Part shown: positions 48,538 through 64,000 of the stretch, piece after piece
Numbering within the stretch: the first letter of the stretch is position 1
How the letters are laid out: each line of letters begins with the position of its first letter
NCBI GenBank assembly: GCA_011109175.1
Contig: RDEW01000019.1
Coordinates: 308,028-372,027, forward strand
Direction of reading: 5' to 3'
DNA: 64,000 nt
Origin: Dicyema japonicum
Lineage: Eukaryota > Animalia > Dicyemida
The notes under the pieces: generated by a model
Databases searched by the model: none
Told to the model about the DNA's origin: nothing
The model's input: only the letters and a program-made list of their open reading frames with translations
Program-made: the position numbers and the translations under genes

Positions 48538-50510
48538 CCTCCAGTTGCCTCTATGATAGACTCGAGTGCTCTGGGGGCAATTTCTTTATCTGTATATTTT
48601 TCTAGTAATTTTTTGCTCTTGACTGGATATCTTGAATTTTTGTTAGGTTCGTTGCCGACAGGTTAGATCCCCATGCAGCACATGCATAGCCTATTGTTGG
48701 CTCGACATACTGCTTGTAGAGGGTCCCGATACCTGGCGGATAAATTCCTCCACAGTTCCAAAGGAAGGCCTTTACAAAATTGATCTTCTTTGCACAGGTT
48801 GATATGATAGATTCCACATGGGCTGAGAAGCAGAGGAAAGTATCAAAAGTTACTCCCAGTATCTTCTGCGTTTTCTTTTGTGGTATAGGTACTCCATTTA
48901 ACGTGACATCAATTGTTTGCGTTCCCATCTTTCTATTCTTAGTAAATAGAGTGACTGCTGACTTTTCGGAACATGCATTTAATCGATTCTCGCACAACCA
49001 TCCAAATATGTTATTTAGTATTCCTTGTAGTCTTTCCTTAGCATGTTCGACGTTTACGTCTCTAGATGCGACAACTATGTCATCGGCATAGGAAAGTAGT
49101 ATGTCATTATTATTCATAGGTACGGGGAGATCACTCAAAAACAAATTAAAAAGGATTGGTGACAGAGGAGATCCTTGGGGTACACCATTGGGTAATAATC
49201 CCGATCTGGAACTCTTGTTTCCGACGGATACTTTCCCTCGGCGTCCACTTACGAAATTTGCTAACCATAACTTTAATGGTGCATCAATTTTTGTCAAAAA
49301 TATTTTTCGTATGAGGATCTTCCTTGGGACAGAGTCGAAAGCTTTTTGAATATCGATCGTACATATGACCGATTTTTCCTGTTTTGGCTTGTTCTTGTGT
49401 CCTTCAGTTATGAACTTCATTAATGTTGTTAGGAAGGAGGTTGTTGATAATCCTTCCTTGAAGCCATGTTGGAATGTACTTGTGGGAGAAAAGGGCGAAT
49501 AACTTTTAGGACCAGTTTCTCCAGGATCCTCGACAAAACACATATAAGGGAAACTGGTCTGTAAGAGCCGGGATCGTTCTTCGGTCTTCCCGGCTTCAAT
49601 ATTGGTCGAATTTTTGATAGTTTCCACAAAGTCGGTATGGTATTTCTGTTCAGCGATGTGTTGTAGATGTTTGTTAATGCATTTATTGATGCTGGGCCCA
49701 AGTGTTTCAGCAGAATAAGAGGAATTTCCGTCTGGGCCACATGAGTTTGTTTTTTTCTGATTTGATATTGCTTTGGATACATCTTTAGGGAGAAAATAAA
49801 TCAGCGGGGCAAATTTGGATGGCTTTCTCTTTATTTTCGTTTGTGTGTTAATCTTTTTATAAGGAATGTGACTGATTCGAATACAATGTTTCATATATTT
49901 ATTCAGATTGAGCTGGCATTGTTCTTTGTTATCTTCGTATTCTGGGTTCTTCAGACGCCTCAACATCTTCCACATGTTGGAAATTGAGGTCTGGTTATTC
50001 ATGGCAGCAGAGATTCGCCTGAGTTTCTTCCTTTGGGTGTTGTTTGTGCTTTTCGTGATAAGAATGTTTAGTGACCTGATTCGATTAATAACCTCTCGTG
50101 AACGATGTATCATTTTCTTAAGGTTGTTTCTTTCCATAATTATTTTCCTTGTTTTTGAGTCGTATTTCAATTTTTCGTTTTTTATATATGCTTTTCTGAT
50201 AAAAATATTTCTTCCGTCAATGATTATTTTGTTGAAATAGTATATAGCTTTGTCTATGGAGGAGAAATTTTCAGATTGGAAATGTTCAGTTTTGAATCAA
50301 CGAAATTTGTAAAGCCAGTCCAATTTGCATTTTTTAATCGTAGAAATGAATAGGCTTCGGTACAAAGCGTGGCTCGCAGTTCAGCTTCATTAACATTGAA
50401 TGGTGGTCGCTCCGGAGGTCATAACGGACCGTCCAATTAATGATCGTGGAAAGACGAGGTGAGCAGACGGATAAGTCCGGAGATGTCACCATGTCCTTCG
50501 TGTTGTATGG
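48367..50510 (-). mobile_element. I/Jockey-group LINE, 5'-truncated in the endonuclease domain
   Basis: TSPDLS..DLRSDHH (end of APE); RT YRPVSL, QHGFKEG, IDIQKAFDSV, GVPQGSPLSPILFN, SYADD and LGVTFD; a few frameshifts. Confidence 0.9.
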
Positions 50511-50599
50511 TGTCCAAAAATAAGATAATAAATTTATTTCATAAAATTTTAATTCTTTAATAAAACACGAATTAAAAATAACAAATTTAATGACTGGAT

Positions 50600-54297: not shown

Positions 54298-57200
54298 ATG
54301 GAAGTCCCCTTAACTGAAAGTATGAAATATTTGGAAGTCGACAAACAAAAACTGTTACAGGAAATGCCACCGTCGGATAACAAAAAGGCTTGCTGGATCC
54401 CCGATGAAAAGGAATGCTACATACAAGCCACGATCGTAAAAACTGACGGAAAAGTAGTAACCGTTCACGTAGATGGAAAGGGAGAGGTTGTCTTACAAAT
54501 TACTGTAGATTACAAGCAATGAAGATGACATTCAGCCAATGAACCCCAGAAATACGAATTGACTACGGATATGTCGACATTAACACATCTTAATGACCCA
54601 AGCATATTGTATAACTTGAGGAGAAGGTACACGAACTCATTCATATATGTAAAATTGCTTAAACAGGGGATAGACATATTCTGGATTGTTCTGTATTGCA
54701 ATAAACCCCTACAGACGTCTCCCAATCTACACCAAGGAAGTGGTTCAGCAATATAAAGGGAAAAGAAGGACTGAAATGCCTCCTCACTTATATGCCGTGG
54801 CTGATATTGCTTATCAGAATATGCTACAAGGTTGTCTAATAGCTGTCACTCGTATTAAGCGATTTAATAATTATTATAGTCAATACAAACATTTGTAAAT
54901 TTATTTAAATAAACTTAAATAAATAAATAAATAATAAATAATTTAAATAAATAAATAAAAATTTATAGACCGGGAGAATCAATCAGTCTTGATAACGTTT
55001 TATTTGAGTAAATAATTTCAGGGGAGAATCTGGGGCAGGGAAAACTGAAAATACTAAAAAAGTTATTCAATATTTTGCTTTGGTGGCTGCCACCTCGGTT
55101 AAAAAAGATGAAACGGAGACCAAAGGGGTAATCATGGTTTATTATTAAAATTAGACTCTGGAAGACCAGATTGTGCAGGCAAATCCTGTATTAGAGGCAT
55201 ATGGGAATGCGAAAACAACACGTAACAACAACTCTTCTCGATTTGTAGGATTTATCCATATTATAGGGAAAATTTGTTAGAATTCATTTCGGTATGACTG
55301 GGAAGATTGCAGGAGCTGACATTGAGACTTGTTGGTGAATTAATAATTATAGATTTGCTCGAAAAGTCAAGAGTTACTATGTGCGGATCAAAAGAGCGAA
55401 ATTACCACATTTTTTATCAAATTTTATCAAATTCAATTCCTGAATATACCGGTGGTCCTAGTTTAATAAAAATAGAAAAACTTTTGCTGGATCCGAATCC
55501 ATCCAAATACAAGTTCGTCTCTAATGGGTCCCTGACCGTGGATAACATGGATGACAAGGAAGAGATGATTTTGACGGATGTTTGTGACATTTTTAATATC
55601 AGAAAGCTTTTGATATTCTGGGATTCACTAACGAAGAGAAACTGAGTGTACTGAAGTGCACAGGTGCTATTCTTCACCTGGGAGAAATGAAGTTCAAACA
55701 GAGACCAAAGGAAGAACAGGCGGAAGCCGACGATACCTCAGGTTTATGACTAAATTAATAGTCAGAGGCTGAAAAGGCTGCGTATTTACTTGGAGTTAAC
55801 GCACAGGATCTTTTAAATTCCTTATTAAAACCGAGAGTCAAGGTGGGTGCAGAATTTGTCACCAAAGGACAAAATTTAGATCAGGTACGTTATAGACAAA
55901 CTTTAAAGGTAACCAATTCAGTGGGAGCCATCGCAAAGTCGACTTATGAGAGGATGTTCAACTGGCTCGTAAAGCGTGTAAACAAAACTCTTGCGACAAA
56001 TGTTAAGCGACAGCATTTCATCGGTGTATTGGACATTGCAGGATTCGAAATATTTGACTTCAATACATTCGAGCAGCTTTGCATAAACTACACGAATGAG
56101 AGATTGCAACAGTTTTTCAACCACCACATGTTTGTCCTCGAACAAGAAGAGTACAAGAAACAGGAGATCGAATGGGAATTTATAGATTTTGGAATGGATC
56201 TTCAGTCCTGTATTGACCTCATCGAAAAGGTTTTATTTTAGACTCAAATATTAGCCGATGGGAATTTTGTCTATTCTCGAGGAAGAATGCATGTTTCCTA
56301 AGGCCACCGATAAAAGCTTTATGGAAAAACTGTACAACAACCACGCTGGGAAAACTGCTGCCTTCACAAAGCCAAAGGTTCAAAAAGCATCTCCTCCCGT
56401 CCACTTTGAGATTCATCATTATGCTGGAACTGTTAACTTCAAAAATAACTTTTAGGTTGGATATAACATTGATAATTGGCTGGAAAGAAACAAAAATCCG
56501 ATCAGCGACAGTGTTATAGAAGTTTTAAGTGATTCCAAGGATCCCCTCGTCTCTGAACTGTATAAGAAAAGTCACAATTCATATGAAAGTTAGGTGAAGA
56601 CGACGGTAAAGCCGGTGGTGGGAAAAAACGGAAAGGTGCTTCCTCGCAAACGATTTCTTCAGTTCATAAAGTCTTAAAAATTCAAATAAATTAGGAATCA
56701 TTGGGGAAGTTGATGATAAATTTGTACAGCACACATCCTCACTTTGTCCGCTGTATTATTCCCAATGAAAATAAAGAACCTGGTTTTATTTTGGTCATTA
56801 TAGGAGGGATTATTGACTCGCATCTTGTTCTCCACCAATTGCAGTGTAATGGAGTTTTGGAAGGAATTAGAATTTGTCGTAAAGGCTACCCTAATAGGAT
56901 GACATACCCTGAATTCAAGCAAAGATACTCAATACTTGCCCCCAATGCAATCCCTCAAGGATTTGTTGATGGAAAAGTTGTCACGGAAAAGATTTTAGCA
57001 GCATTAAACCTTGAACTCAACAGCAACAAACTAGGAGTCACAAAAGTGTTTTTCAAGGCAGGAATCCTGGGAACCTTAGAAGAGATAAGGGACGATAGAC
57101 TTGGCCGTATTATTGGAATGTTTCAAGCAAATATTCGAGGTTATCTGTGCAGAAAGTTTTACAAGAGACTTCAAGATCAAAGGTCACGTCCGTAATATAT

Positions 57201-58043
57201 TTTAGAATTGGTTTATCGATAATCCAGAGGAACAAAGGAAGCATTTACAATTACGCACGTGGGCTTGGTGGAAATTATTCCTAAAGGTCGTCTCGTATAT
57301 GTATATCAGGTCAAACCGCTCTTGAATGTTGCACGGCAAGAGGATGAAATGAAAATGAAAGAGCAGGAGTTAAAGGAGACTAAAGAAAAGCTGGAAAAGA
57401 TCGACAAATTGAAGATAGAATTGGAAGAACAGAATATAAAGCTTTTGAAGGAAAAGGATGAGCTTATAATGCAAATAAAGGGGGAACAAAATAGTTTGGA
57501 CGATGCTCAGGAGATGATTGACAATTTGATCAACCAAAAGTGCGAGATGGAACAGAAAATTAAAGAATTTGAGGATAGAATATTCGACGAAGAGGACATT
57601 AACGCAAAACTGGAAGACTCGAAAATAAAAATGGAGGAAGAAATCGAAAATTTGAAAAAGGATGTCGACGACCTCGAAGACTTGTGGGCTAAAGTAAATT
57701 TCCTGACTAACTCGAAGGCTGAGAGTGATAATAAGAAATACAATGAACAAATCGAGAAAACGAATAAGGAAATGACTAACAAAAATGATGAGATAGAGAA
57801 TTTATTGTAGACCAAGAAGAAACTGGAATTTGAGTTGTCGGAATCCGAGGACAAGTTGAGCGAATCCCTACAAAAAGTTTCGCAGTTTAGTCAAGCAAAT
57901 TCTAAAATGGAAAATGAGATTGAAACCGTATTTTTAATTTAAACAAACGCCAGCTTTCGAGCGACCTCACTAAGGAGACGAAAGTTAGAGCCAACTTGGA
58001 GAAAACCAAGTCAAAATTGGACAACGAAGTCAAAACTCTTAAG
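54298..58043 (+). pseudogene. Striated-type myosin II heavy chain (head, IQ neck, S2), lacking the LMM tail; disabled as sequenced
   Basis: [41 protein letters not shown] and [14 protein letters not shown]; 20 introns (19 of about 21-27 nt). 1-nt deletions near 54545 and 57235 and an in-frame TAG at 57808-57810. Confidence 0.9.
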
Positions 58044-58964
58044 ATTATGAAGAATCTTCACGTTGTATTTACTATGAATCCGTCTGAGGAAGGCCTTAAA
58101 GATAAGGCGTCGGCATCTCCAGCATTGTTTAATAGGTTTGTTTATTCAACATTATCAGATGCGTTTTGAATTGGTTTGGCGATTGGTCTAGAAATGCTCT
58201 TTACCAGGTAGCTTCTGAATTCTTGACTCGTCTTGATTTGGAGTCCCAGAATGTATTTATGAAATTAAGACTTTAGTATGATTATGATGGTGTGTGTTGA
58301 AATGGTCATTCCTAATACTATTTATCCATTAACACTGAGGAACGCTATAACAAATGCAATGATTCATATCCATGAGAGTGTGGAAGAGTTAATGAAGATT
58401 TACGAAGGAAGAAACTTCCGACGACATTTTTGACACCACGAATTACCTTGATTTGATAAATCACTATGTTATAGTTTTTACTCAATTTAGGTGTCTATTT
58501 TTAATGAGAAAAAGCTTGAAATTAGAAGAACAACAGTTACATATTGATGTGGGTCTTGGGAAAATTAATGAGACTGTACACACAAGTGACGAACTAAGAA
58601 AAATCGTTACAGTCAAACGGGCGGACCTGGATAGCAAAATGAGGCTGCAAATGCTAAGCTACATCAAATGGTGTAATAACTTGATTTTTATTCTTAGTTA
58701 AGAGATCAAACAGGAGACAGAAAAAAGACGAACAGAGTCGAGCGCAATGAGAGAGGAAATAAATCAGAGACAGAAACAGATAGTTAAATTCGGAGCTGTC
58801 GTTGGTTGAGCCTGCTGTTAATGAAACAAACTTGGTTATAATGTGTAATAATAGTTAGCTGTGAAGAGTATAAAGAGCAGAATTTGGTAGAGATTAAAGC
58901 CTTGAACAGTCCGCCTTCCTCCATCAAGCTTGCAGTTGAATCTGTTGCCACTTTGCTTGGAAAA
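58044..58964 (+). pseudogene. DYNC1H1: Cytoplasmic dynein 1 heavy chain internal fragment (end of AAA4, stalk CC1, start of MTBD)
   Basis: [61 protein letters not shown] and SIKLAVESV; five 23-27 nt introns; several frameshifts. Confidence 0.9.
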
Positions 58965-58965
58965 A

Positions 58966-59390
58966 TGGTTCCTTGAAATGAACCATCGCAAAACTGACAT
59001 TGTGGAAGTCAGAATGGAATGCAGATCAAGTGAAACATGGCGAAAACAAACAAACTTGGCTCTTTACTTGGAGACAGTCAAGATTTTGCCAAAAGGAAAG
59101 CCCTCGCTTGGGTAACGATGAACAAGTTAAAGAAAGAGTGGGTTGGCAAACGACAATCCTGCACACCACTTCGTTTGAGACTGTATGAAGCCTTTGTCAA
59201 GCCGATCTAGTGTACAATTCATCGACCTGAGGAACGTCCAAAATTGAACTACTTGGACTAGACTCTTTCCATCGAAGACAACTTAGATCCCTACTAGGAC
59301 TGAACTGGCCAGCAAGAAGTGAAAACGAGTTGAGGAAACTCTCCTACGATTGAGGAGGTTAAGAAATTGGTTCGGAGGATTGTTTTGAAT
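58966..59390 (+). mobile_element. RTE-like LINE C-terminal remnant truncating the dynein fragment
   Basis: LGSLLGDSQDFAKRKALA, LRLYEAFVKP and LDSFHRRQLRSLLG. Confidence 0.75.
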
Positions 59391-59499
59391 GCTGCACGAG
59401 TGAAATTATAACTATTATATTTTACAAATGTTGTTTATAATAATATAAACGTGATTTTTATTTCTGCGATAATGGATGAAAATTGGCAAATAACCAGAA

Positions 59500-60460
59500 A
59501 TAAAAACCGTGATACTCTTCAAATTGGGTGCCGCATGGAAACAACATTGTCATCAACGCTTAAATTTTTTATCGTACGTAACTTTGTAAGATTTTTTGAA
59601 TGTCTTAAGTTATCTTCACGTTTTATGCGCTTAAACTACAAAAATTGAAATTGCTAAACTTCGTTCAAAAAATGGAGTATTCAATTCGATAACTCGCGAG
59701 AATGTTTGACACAAGTATCGGAACAATCTCTAGACTCAAGAGAAACATTGTTCCATTCACAAAAATGGACAGATTTATTCAAATGCAGAGACTTCAGAGT
59801 GAATCACTAGTGAAAAGCAGAAAGTTTGGATTCAAAAATTTTGGATGTATTTCAACACTAAGAAAACAAAACGTTCCCATTTCCGGACCATTAATCCAAA
59901 AAATCGGTATTATTGTAATTCTTAAAATCGTTTTATTAGGACTGAAAGTCGCATCTAGAATCTTACTTCAAATTTTTAAGGCTTCAAACGGATGGCTAGA
60001 AAAATAAATTAAATTTTTAATTCGATTTAATATCAAAATTGACAAATATGAAAAAAAAGATTTTCAATTGCGACGAAACGTGTCTTTTATTCGACGTAGT
60101 CCAAAAAAAATTTTTATTCAAAACAATGAAGAATTATTTGGTTTCAAGCAGAGCAAAGAATAAATAACTGTCTTGCTCTGCTGCAGCTATACAGGATAAA
60201 AATTAGACCTTTTGATTATTGGAAAGTTTCATAATCCAAGATGCTTTAGAATTTCCTCCCGTCAAACCATAATGTTGTATTCTTCATCAAAAAATGCATG
60301 GATGACAAAATATGTGTATAGATGTTGGCTTCATAGGATTAATGAACTTTTTTTATCACAAAATCTGAAAATTATTCTGCTTTTGGACAATGTTGGGCCT
60401 CACAATAATCTTAAGAAAATTATTCTGCTATTGGACAATGCTCACTGTATACTTTGAATC
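59500..60460 (+). mobile_element. Tigger/pogo transposase remnant with a 33-nt intron at 59907-59939
   Basis: NVPISGPLIQKIG|LKVA..FKASNGWLEK, DETCLLF, LLIIGKFHNPRCF, AWMT and KIILLLDN. Confidence 0.8.
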
Positions 60461-60469
60461 TGCTCTACG

Positions 60470-61020
60470 AGATCTCGGGAAGTACTACATCGACGAAATT
60501 ATGGAAATTGTTTACAGCGGTGATATTTACTGTATCAAGTAACAAAGATGCACTAAGACGACCGATGGAGGTAGCACCAGACCGCCGGCTATATGGTCTT
60601 AATTAATGACAATTCGAAACGGATATCGTCGATATCAAAAGGACGGAACCACGCAGTACTGAAAACTAGAGAAACGCCAAAAACTTGGCTCGTTTTTAAC
60701 GACTCAGAAGACATTGCCAGAAAGATATTATAATCTACGGTGACTATACAGAAGCTTTTGAAATGTTGCATCACTCCGACTAAGATTGTATGAGGCTATC
60801 GTGAAATTTATCATTAAATATTTCTTTGGAAAATGGCGTATCTCGAAAACAGATGACGAAGGCTCGACTCCCTTAATAGAAATCAACTACATTCTCTCTT
60901 GGGATTAAGTGGCTTACACTTTAGTTACGATTCGGAAGATGCATGCTGAACTACACTTTACAAATTGGCAGATCAAGGTTCGTGTAAGACGAACCTTCAA
61001 TGGGATGCTGGAACTCGTAG
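60470..61020 (+). mobile_element. RTE-like LINE remnant
   Basis: KLGSFLNDSEDIARK, RLYEAIVK and DSLNRNQLHSLLGIKW. Confidence 0.55.
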
Positions 61021-61029
61021 CGTAGATGT

Positions 61030-62570
61030 TGTGCGCATTTCATTTTCAAGTTGAACTTGGTGTGATTCAAGCTGTCTCTGTACCTTTAAGCTTGTGGAGA
61101 AGGATCCAGTTCTGTTTATGTTGTTATGTATTATTTGATAAAGGTCACCCAATTGGTGTTCTAGAAAGGGGGTATGGTTCGTTTTTATTAATTTTGTGCT
61201 TCGTTTACTGTGTTTTTTATGGGTAGGGAAGATAAACGTCTCGTCTTCAAGGAGTTTTGATCAGTTTCGGAGTCTTTCAAAGAGAGTTGCATTAACTCAC
61301 CTGGCCTTAATATTTTATTATATGTCACCATTTTGGTTTATATTGCAGTATTCGAAGTAAAATGATGATGTTCCTTATATAGTCAATACTCCCATCATCG
61401 TTCACAACTGTTTGAACATATTCCTCTTCATTGAGAGTAATCGTGTGTGAGTAAAGCTAGTAGTTTAAGTCCTTATGATTAATTAGGATAATGCATACGC
61501 CGTTCTGCATAAATCAGAAGAAAACCGTACGTTCTTTAACACCTATCAAAGTCGATTACTTCTGTAATCGTCTTTTGAAGTGAAATTATTCTCTTAGAAA
61601 CGAAAGTATAGCTGTGTGATTCAGTTGTCCAACCAGGATAATAATTAAATCATAATAAATTTGAATTAATTAACACCAATTTTATATCCCAGAAAAGTGA
61701 ACGATTAAGTTAGTTAAATGTTAAATTGAACTCCGCAAGTTCCAAGTACATTATACTTGTTTTTAATGGCACTGCAGACTGAAATAACATTATTAATTAC
61801 GTAATTCACTTGTCCGCCTGCTTCTCTAAATATATTATTTTCTAACATATACAATTTATTATCTTGATAGATATTGTCTATTAGTTTTGCTTTATATCTA
61901 TACTAAATATAATATCATACGCCTCTGGATTTCCGAATGAATCGATACAAACGATAGCACTATATTATTATATTAAAAATACTATTTTAAATAATAAAGT
62001 TGGAAGTAATTTTAAAAATTTGAATAACACTTATTCCTCGAGGAAAGTCTACATTAATTACAAAAAAACTACATTTCTAAGCATGATAAATTTTCCGCAA
62101 ATTCGATCGATATGAATTTGAGGGATTTACATATCAAAATCTCTATAAATTTAAAAAATATATATAACATTCCATAATGGTGGGTGGGAATGTTTGGTTG
62201 TCTACAGATTTCAAACTTTCATCATAATAACCACATCGACTATGAATAATTAATAATAATTACAAAGCATCTAACTTCATTCCCAATAATGAAAAGTTAA
62301 CATAAGGTTCAAATTTAATATTTTGAACTTCTAATCCATTACTTTAAAATCAGGAAGGCCAGTTATTGAATATGTACAATTAATCCAATATCTTAATAAT
62401 TTATATTTAATACAGAATTCTACGCAACACTGTTATTCGTTTTTGCATATTCTGTGATGTTAATATATCGAATGACAAGTTTAACACAGAAAAGTGAACA
62501 TCTATGATGATTAAATACCAAAATAATGAATATACGATAACCACAAGAAATAAAAATTACTACATGAAAT
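61030..62570 (-). other. Probable unidentified host gene (or relic) with tiny introns
   Basis: Exon-like LYSHTITLNEEEYVQTVVNDDGSIDYIRNIIILLRILQYKPKW|PGELMQ with a 23-nt GT-AG intron; further exon-like blocks upstream; no full model. Confidence 0.3.
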
Positions 62571-63744
62571 ACAGTCGTCATAATTAATTATAATTTTATT
62601 AAATAAAGTGTTGGATTAAATAAATAAAATTAAAAAATAATTTAATTAAATTCACACAATTTACATGGTTTTCCGATTTGTTTAATAATTTTACCATAAA
62701 ATTTAATAAATTTGTCAAAAATGTCTAATAACTATGCCTTAATGTTTAGTAACTTTATCAAAATGTTTAAAAATTGTGTCAAAAAGTTTAATACCTTTTG
62801 AATAATGTTTAATTACAGGTCAATTTGCGCAAAAATTAAATTTTAAGTGAATCTGAAGAAAGGCTACACACATTGACACTTCAGAAATTCACTCACAATA
62901 ACCAATTCTTTTGTTGTCTATCTGGAAGCTGCTTTTCGTAATTGAGAGCTAAAGCTTGTCCTACTTCTATCTAGGAATTATGATATGCGGATGACCTGGA
63001 TTTTAGTTTTGAATATGATGATATCTATTCTTTTTCTAACAAGAGTACTGCAGGGTAAATGAAATTATTTTTTTCAGACAAGAGTACTGCAAGTTAATTA
63101 AATTGGTCTAATTTTGGAGAATTAGACGTGAAGTCAACACAAAGCAGTCTGAAGTAGTTAGCAGGAGAATGATAAGAGAATCTTTTGCCTTCTTTAGAAT
63201 CAAATAGATGATATTGTTCCAAGTAACGAATGACCAACATTCGCTCTCTCGAATTGATTTTATGTGAAATATTAAAAAATCGAATAAGGTAATCGTTTGA
63301 TGACAAAATAATTTTTTGTGCGATTTTGGCAAATTTGTGCGATCAGGACTGAAAGCTTTTCAACTTCCGATGTTCTTTTCTACTTGATAGTAAAAAATAG
63401 GTCATATTTTTCATTGACAGTAAAATTAGGTCAACCGTTAAAGTAATTTTAAATATACATTTGATGACAATAGATGCTATTAGTACTCTTACTATTATTC
63501 GCAACCAAATGTGGATGCAATTGTTTATTCTGACCTTGCACCCTTTTCTTATTTCTTGATCAGTGGACGTATAGGAGGACATTCCCTTAATCATTTAAAT
63601 GACCAAATTAATTTGAAATCACATTAAGATATGTTTTTGAAATTTGAAAAAGAAAAAGTTTCTTTAACGCAATATGATGCTAGAAATCAGCTTCAAGACG
63701 ACTAGAAATTATTCAACAAATGTTTGGTTGAATGTTTATCCATG

Positions 63745-64000
63745 TGGTAAAATTGGCAATTTTCTGACGACGAGGCAGTGAGAATAGCTGTCCGTCTTGA
63801 CCTTAATTTTGTGTTAAATAAAAATGGACTTTTGGATGCTGGATCGATGTTTATCATCCTTTAAGCTGATTTATTGCAGATCCCCGACATGAGTCACTAC
63901 TTGACATTAAAAAATGCACTTTCTCTTCTGGCCACCACTAGTTTTTTTTCTATGGCAACGCCCCGAAGCGGAAACAATAATCCCATTCGCTAATGGTCGA
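63745..64000 (+). mobile_element. CRE-clade LINE remnant
   Basis: IGNFL.DDEAVRIAVRL, DPRHESLL and GKRP-like ..ETIIPFANGR. Confidence 0.5.

Follow-up and report, generated by a model that had tools for sequence, protein, structure and literature searches.

Background

Joins between unrelated genes have been described in several systems. In the misjoins of hybrid assemblies, a short and error-rich piece bridges two unrelated unique loci, and an orphan scaffold starts at the breakpoint. Chimeric retrocopies of the U6-L1 type, which are mediated by LINEs (long interspersed nuclear elements), carry a foreign piece in sense orientation at the 5' end of a 5'-truncated LINE, with microhomology upstream. 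Chimeras can also be made by ligation, and somatic genome rearrangement together with extrachromosomal circular DNA has been reported for Dicyema japonicum (Noto 2003 and Awata 2006, as cited in PMC6543705). Here we analyse a stretch of 64,000 nucleotides from the genome of this animal (C124:308028-372027, in the following "the window"; the assembly has 67.5 Mb in 377 scaffolds, denoted by C and a number). In it, a gene for a myosin II heavy chain of the striated-muscle type is represented by its 5' part, which continues in frame into a piece of a cytoplasmic dynein heavy chain gene; the remnant of a LINE follows. At face value, the contig suggests that exon shuffling has combined an actin motor with a microtubule motor; we find that neither an annotation nor a citation in this sense is warranted. 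The locus is not a fusion gene; it is probably a join that was present on very few DNA molecules and was promoted into the haploid reference.

The locus shares both features of the hybrid-assembly misjoins, and the history of the assembly is of this kind: Falcon contigs, built from 6.8 Gb of PacBio RS II subreads, were merged with Platanus scaffolds, and allelic redundancy was then taken out by HaploMerger (PMC6736024). With the LINE-mediated retrocopies it has in common the sense orientation of the foreign piece, the truncated LINE and the upstream microhomology; on the other hand, its introns are kept, no target-site duplication is found and the target is not resumed. Somatic rearrangement would yield low-frequency joins of unrelated unique sequences in whole-animal DNA, although neither a circle nor a developmental pattern is shown here.

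Results

We first describe the join itself. A previous inspection of the letters of this stretch (the sequence-only reading) had described an in-frame join of myosin and dynein at 58043/58044, and this is indeed what the assembled contig contains: the open reading frame (ORF) 57996-58169 reads ..EVKTLK and then continues as dynein, Pfam recognises both sides, and the match of the AAA_8 profile (dynein D4) extends across the join. The same reading had called it a join at the level of DNA, which is borne out by the introns of 21-28 nt that are kept on both sides. Its proposal for the breakpoint, namely an AG microhomology between the end of a myosin exon and a dynein acceptor site, is correct for the acceptor only. 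The string at the junction (58038-58047, forward strand) is CTTAAG followed by ATTA, as determined from the dynein alignment, the start of scaffold C91 (see below) and the counting of residues against human MYH7. CTTAAG (58038-58043) is common to the dynein parent, where it forms the last 6 nt of a 25-nt intron on C2; the dynein exon begins at C2:631685. The shared string probably extends to 10 nt (CTTAAGATTA), the next four (ATTA) being most likely common to myosin as well, because C91 starts exactly 4 nt past CTTAAG. With both loci at hand (C2 for dynein, C124 plus C91 for myosin), we see that the dynein breakpoint is an exon boundary and that the myosin breakpoint is not.

The myosin part extends from its ATG at 54298 to 58043 on the forward strand and was delimited using Pfam, exon-by-exon reading, structure matches and the alignment to MYH7. 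It consists of an SH3-like N-terminus, the motor with its P-loop, two IQ motifs and the first 228 residues of the rod, up to the equivalent of MYH7 residue 1063. In the DNA we read the P-loop motif GESGAGKT and, at about 57120-57290, the IQ motifs. Pfam, which was run on the window and on the whole genome, finds upstream of the join, in this order, Myosin_N (PF02736), pieces of Myosin_head (PF00063, profile positions 30-679) and Myosin_tail_1 (PF01576); positions 1-221 of the last profile lie inside the window and the remainder on C91. Note that the myosin exons were read by hand from the DNA, guided by a local tblastn against the genome's own paralogues. Protein and profile searches used single exons, and joined translations were printed locally for frame checks. 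A search for stop-free paths with GT..AG introns of 20-34 nt lets spurious introns mask true lesions, and it miscounted a 138-nt intron as lesions; it was kept solely as a lower bound for the lesions in the tail on C91.

Compared with solved structures, the exon that encodes the converter and lever matches the striated-muscle myosins of scallop and squid with E = 2e-72, and non-muscle and smooth myosins with 1e-46 to 1e-48. The other myosin II genes of the genome are only about 45% identical to the myosin of the window in the local tblastn. By these comparisons, the window myosin reads as the muscle-type paralogue, nearer to muscle than to non-muscle myosin II. It resembles the striated-muscle myosins of bilaterians (scallop, squid, MYH7) in its SH3-like N-terminus, the GESGAGKT motor and the two IQ motifs, and rod residues 1-126, encoded by the first rod exon in the window, align without gaps to residues 836-961 of human MYH7. 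It differs from them in that it belongs to an animal without muscle cells, has introns of 21-28 nt, carries three lesions and lies on two scaffolds. That an animal devoid of muscle should have retained a muscle-type myosin agrees with a published finding on dicyemids, in which troponins are retained although there are no muscle cells (PMC6543705). We also considered octopus contamination or a transfer from host to parasite, and rejected both on the grounds of the tiny introns, which are those of this genome, and of scallop scoring as high as squid.

The one exception among the myosin introns is an AT-rich GT..AG intron of 138 nt with an AAAT-type microsatellite, which is located directly before the P-loop exon (54831-54968, forward strand). 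As a candidate lesion it was rejected, since its excision restores the reading frame. The frame is also open through 56103-56138 in the motor region (ORF 55843-56241). The three lesions that remain are the two frameshifts and the TAG that had been noticed in the sequence-only reading. The first frameshift is a loss of 1 nt in a C run (54544-54547, forward strand), between ..DDIQPMNP and QKYEL.., which we find both in the DNA and in the frame changes of tblastn against the paralogues; being in a homopolymer, it may be an error of the long-read consensus. The second, read from the DNA, is a loss of 1 nt in an A run within the second IQ motif (57234-57236, forward strand; ..IIQRN / RKHLQLRTWAWWKLF..), again a homopolymer. 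The third lesion is an in-frame TAG in the rod (57808-57810, forward strand), seen in the ORFs, and no GT..AG intron removes it without loss of homologous rod sequence.

In the whole-genome Pfam scan, there is no further myosin rod on C124. Instead, a rod without a head is found at the very end of C91, a scaffold of 21,033 bp, on the minus strand; it is single-copy in the genome. This rod can be read from C91:21033 to about 18050, that is, over ~2.98 kb that contain 14 small introns and are free of lesions, whereas shuffled controls give 7-11 lesions, and the about 870 remaining myosin residues are in open frame. The third exon on C91 aligns to MYH7 1116-1161, such that the first whole residue on C91 corresponds to MYH7 1066; the offset is the same with tarantula myosin. 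C91 itself starts with two bases that complete a codon. The window part ends at MYH7 1063, C91 begins at 1066, and two bases complete the codon between them; therefore, exactly 4 nt separate the two scaffolds, and the reading frame is preserved between them. Read together, they are one striated-type myosin heavy chain gene, split over C124 and C91 and cut in the middle of an exon at the join. Because of the high conservation and the intact tail, the myosin gene itself is probably a working one, and it is its reference sequence that is broken.

A partial second copy of the same motor (window 55970-57129) is present at C13:1187920-1189882. It is 92-93% identical, an 820-nt repeat has been inserted into it, and a sequence resembling reverse transcriptase lies immediately in front of it on the same strand.

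The dynein piece (58044-58964, forward strand) is a copy of five exons and their introns from a cytoplasmic dynein heavy chain gene, the parent being C2:631685-632626. Including the flanking letters, window 58038-58965 is 95% identical to C2:631679-632626, a stretch of 948 nt. The parent is intact, and its exons can be translated without a lesion. They encode the last portion of AAA4, then CC1, which is the outgoing strand of the stalk, and then the beginning of the microtubule-binding domain (MTBD). The AAA_8 and MT profiles match these exons weakly, and the database proteins that match the dynein half best are annotated as cytosolic dynein heavy chain 1. The piece is the sole extra copy of the 948-nt stretch in the genome, and we did not find copies of dynein sequence up- or downstream of that stretch elsewhere in the genome. 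All five dynein introns are kept.

A dynein stalk needs both of its strands, CC1 and CC2. The end of AAA4 and the start of the MTBD had been recognised correctly in the sequence-only reading; what it took for the stalk coiled coil is one strand, CC1, and the piece stops at 58964 within the first part of the MTBD. Because the return strand CC2 is absent, neither a stalk nor microtubule binding is possible, even if the piece had no errors. With the splicing pattern of the parent, the frame is shifted by an insertion of 1 nt at 58289, and the first stop is a TGA at 58298-58300 (forward strand), 69 dynein codons past the join. Together with the TAG at 57808 and the two myosin frameshifts, this means that the locus has no single open frame. 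Were every indel (insertion or deletion) an error, the frame would reach the LINE and stop a few codons on. The idea of an actin motor that had lost its filament-forming tail and gained a microtubule-binding stalk thus fails on the intact tail on C91, the single stalk strand and the stop after 69 dynein codons.

Next, we asked what kind of mutations separate the dynein piece from its parent. There are 14 substitutions and 16 indels, 15 of which are 1 nt long, mostly in short homopolymers; six of the indels form three compensating pairs with partners within 12 nt of each other. In the transposon copies of the window and their relatives, on the other hand, the ratio of private indels to substitutions is 0.1-0.3. 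By Fisher's test, the excess of indels in the piece is significant both relative to the repeats of the window itself (p = 0.008) and relative to pooled copies (p = 9e-7). Expressed as the density of 1-nt indels, the piece has 1.6%, the downstream repeats 0.16% and the myosin 0.06%, so that it is about 10 times more indel-rich than its surroundings. The level of substitutions, 1.5%, is near the published heterozygosity of Dicyema japonicum (1.24%; PMC6736024). Since the spectrum is rich in indels and poor in substitutions, the frameshifts of the dynein part are probably not biological; they had been noticed before and do exist, but the spectrum resembles consensus errors rather than decay. It fits a long-read consensus from very few passes.

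Two other explanations of this spectrum were rejected. A general drop of consensus quality after the join does not agree with the downstream repeats (60945-64000), in which the ratio of indels to substitutions is near normal; the anomaly is limited to the dynein piece. An old, decayed pseudogene fragment is at odds with the number of substitutions, as 16 real indels should bring 50-100 of them at the ratios of the neighbouring repeats.

That the assembly is otherwise clean can be seen from a pair of non-muscle-type myosin II sequences, C101:683416-686697 and C179:311296-314577, because they are 99.76% identical and differ by 7 mismatches and only 1 indel in 3.3 kb. The two are either alleles that failed to collapse or the product of a duplication that is very recent. 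Single Ns, which are typical of gap-closed Illumina scaffolds, occur in C91, C13 and C32, and the window and the C2 locus are without N.

We then looked for sampled 31-mers of 56500-58960 in sequencing runs. In four runs of one 2019 sample, which is probably the source of the assembly, a share of 0.64-0.67 is present; in a small 2017 run from another study the share is 0.46. The computed expectation is 0.76 if only the words of myosin and those shared with C2 are present, about 1 if the piece exists as assembled, and 0.49 for the spliced myosin transcript alone. These shares lean weakly towards an absence of the words that are private to the dynein piece.

At the protein level, we were not able to find a protein bridging such a join among 5.8 billion database proteins, nor any match by exact look-up of the dynein-piece ORF or by a word search of the 183-aa rod ORF, in a collection that apparently does not hold the proteins of this organism. 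The word search with the junction ORF returned only dynein exons of other organisms, with identities of up to 84%.

Discussion

We propose that, in one or a few long-read molecules, myosin became connected to dynein via the shared string of 6-10 nt (CTTAAG, probably CTTAAGATTA), and that a second join then linked dynein to the LINE. Falcon would have threaded its contig through these myosin-dynein-LINE molecules. The flanks would have been corrected by the abundant reads of the true loci; the dynein piece would have been too short for correction by reads of the dynein locus, and would have kept its errors. Finally, HaploMerger would have trimmed the Illumina scaffold overlapping C124 to the end of the similarity, and the true continuation would have been left as the orphan C91. 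Such an orphan tail would be there because Falcon and Platanus sequences were merged before alleles were removed.

The molecules in question could have arisen in two ways. A purely technical chimera is a distinct possibility, although we would stop short of calling it probable. A real but rare rearrangement, somatic or polymorphic in the pooled animals, is somewhat unlikely, albeit plausible in an animal that is reported to rearrange its somatic genome. Judging from the sequence, a myosin-dynein protein would be made in neither case. The suspicion, voiced in the sequence-only reading as a fallback, that the locus may be a decayed chimera or an artefact of amplification or assembly therefore pointed in the right direction. 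The published reference of Dicyema japonicum splits a conserved striated-type myosin heavy chain gene between C124 and C91, with a short, error-rich bridge at the break, and indel-rich islands beside orphan scaffold ends may reveal other such joins in this assembly.

Several observations weigh against a join on a minority of molecules, and in particular against a technical one. The TAG at 57808 is a lesion of the substitution type, which is a rare product of long-read consensus. In the dynein piece, all 16 indels are confined to the last 676 nt, whereas the initial 245 nt (58044-58288) have 6 substitutions but are free of indels (Poisson p = 0.014); a uniformly low coverage does not account for this. 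A shared string of 6-10 nt is atypical of ligation chimeras and not expected where blunt ends are ligated, and the description of the library mentions no amplification. Furthermore, myosin, dynein piece and LINE all have the same sense orientation, for which there is 1 chance in 4. The shortfall of 31-mers could also stem from the polymorphism of 1.24%, and the scaffold end of C91 would be equally expected from a branch of the assembly graph at a real structural variant.

A further reading is that the join is real DNA, a young rearrangement of low frequency (somatic or polymorphic) that was formed by template switching or end joining via the 10-nt string, with the dynein frameshifts being errors of the consensus. 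We regard this as unlikely. If it were true, there would be an allele encoding a muscle-type myosin motor that is followed, in the same frame, by about 270 residues of dynein AAA4 and CC1.

A fixed chimeric pseudogene of the germline is less likely still. In this case, the 5' part of the myosin gene would have been duplicated, the duplicate would have been joined at the level of DNA to a dynein fragment and a LINE, and the whole would now be decaying; the true 5' part would have been discarded as allelic, leaving C91. The TAG and the two frameshifts in the myosin part would find a natural place here, the shared string suits microhomology-mediated joining, and incomplete copies of genes are present in this genome, such as the one on C13 described above. 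However, the two frameshifts of the myosin fall within homopolymers, its motor has remained very close to the myosins of scallop and squid, and the dynein piece has just 14 substitutions (1.5%) beside its 16 indels, while decay predicts 50-100.

It is also conceivable, if very doubtful, that the locus is a young insertion allele made in one retrotransposition: the reverse transcriptase of the LINE would have switched from LINE RNA to unspliced dynein pre-mRNA, the end of the cDNA would have been joined to a nicked myosin exon by way of the shared string, and C91 would be the intact allele. The 5'-truncated LINE that abuts the piece, the sense orientation of all parts and the microhomology at the 5' join are what such an event might leave. 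On the other hand, the template would have to be an RNA with all five dynein introns, and not a processed one. Past the 3' end of the LINE (~59449) we find neither a target duplication nor a resumed myosin tail, but the remnant of a pogo element and other repeats; identity to the nearest LINE copy is just 95%; and an excess of indels that is confined to the dynein piece is left unexplained.

A working fusion of an actin motor with a microtubule-binding dynein stalk is next to inconceivable, for although the join is in frame and, with all indels taken as consensus errors, the frame could reach 58964, the assembled frame ends at the TGA at 58298-58300, the lack of CC2 and the partial MTBD allow neither stalk nor binding domain to form, the myosin part carries a TAG while its tail is intact on C91, and no join-spanning protein is found in a collection of 5.8 billion in which the organism is apparently not represented.

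Sequence downstream of the join

The sequence-only reading had placed a truncating RTE element at 58966. A LINE is present, but it starts at 58965: the remnant (58965-59449, forward strand, in sense) covers the region past the YADD box of the reverse transcriptase, has an internal deletion of ~240 nt and belongs to a family with more than 40 copies. It is 5'-truncated, because other copies continue upstream through the YADD box (..YADDVDFV..). Pfam gave no match on the short, decayed reverse-transcriptase pieces of the LINE copies.

The LINE is followed by the remnant of a pogo/Tc5-type DNA transposon (59702-60454, forward strand), which was identified by the Pfam profiles HTH_Tnp_Tc5 and DDE_1 and by its repeat copies. 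The window is wholly repeat from 58965 to 64000, and C124 extends 750 kb further. LINE and pogo/Tc5 remnant are collinear at several other loci (C32, C356 and C235), which suggests a composite that is copied as a unit. At one scaffold end, C32:53200-53755, there is a direct duplication of ~200 nt with a short filler containing N in between, a typical artefact of gap closing; the LINE copy beside this end has an internal deletion. Elsewhere in the window, a 516-nt repeat at 50000-50516 has copies of 98-99% identity on at least 8 scaffolds, and is thus a young and possibly still active element.

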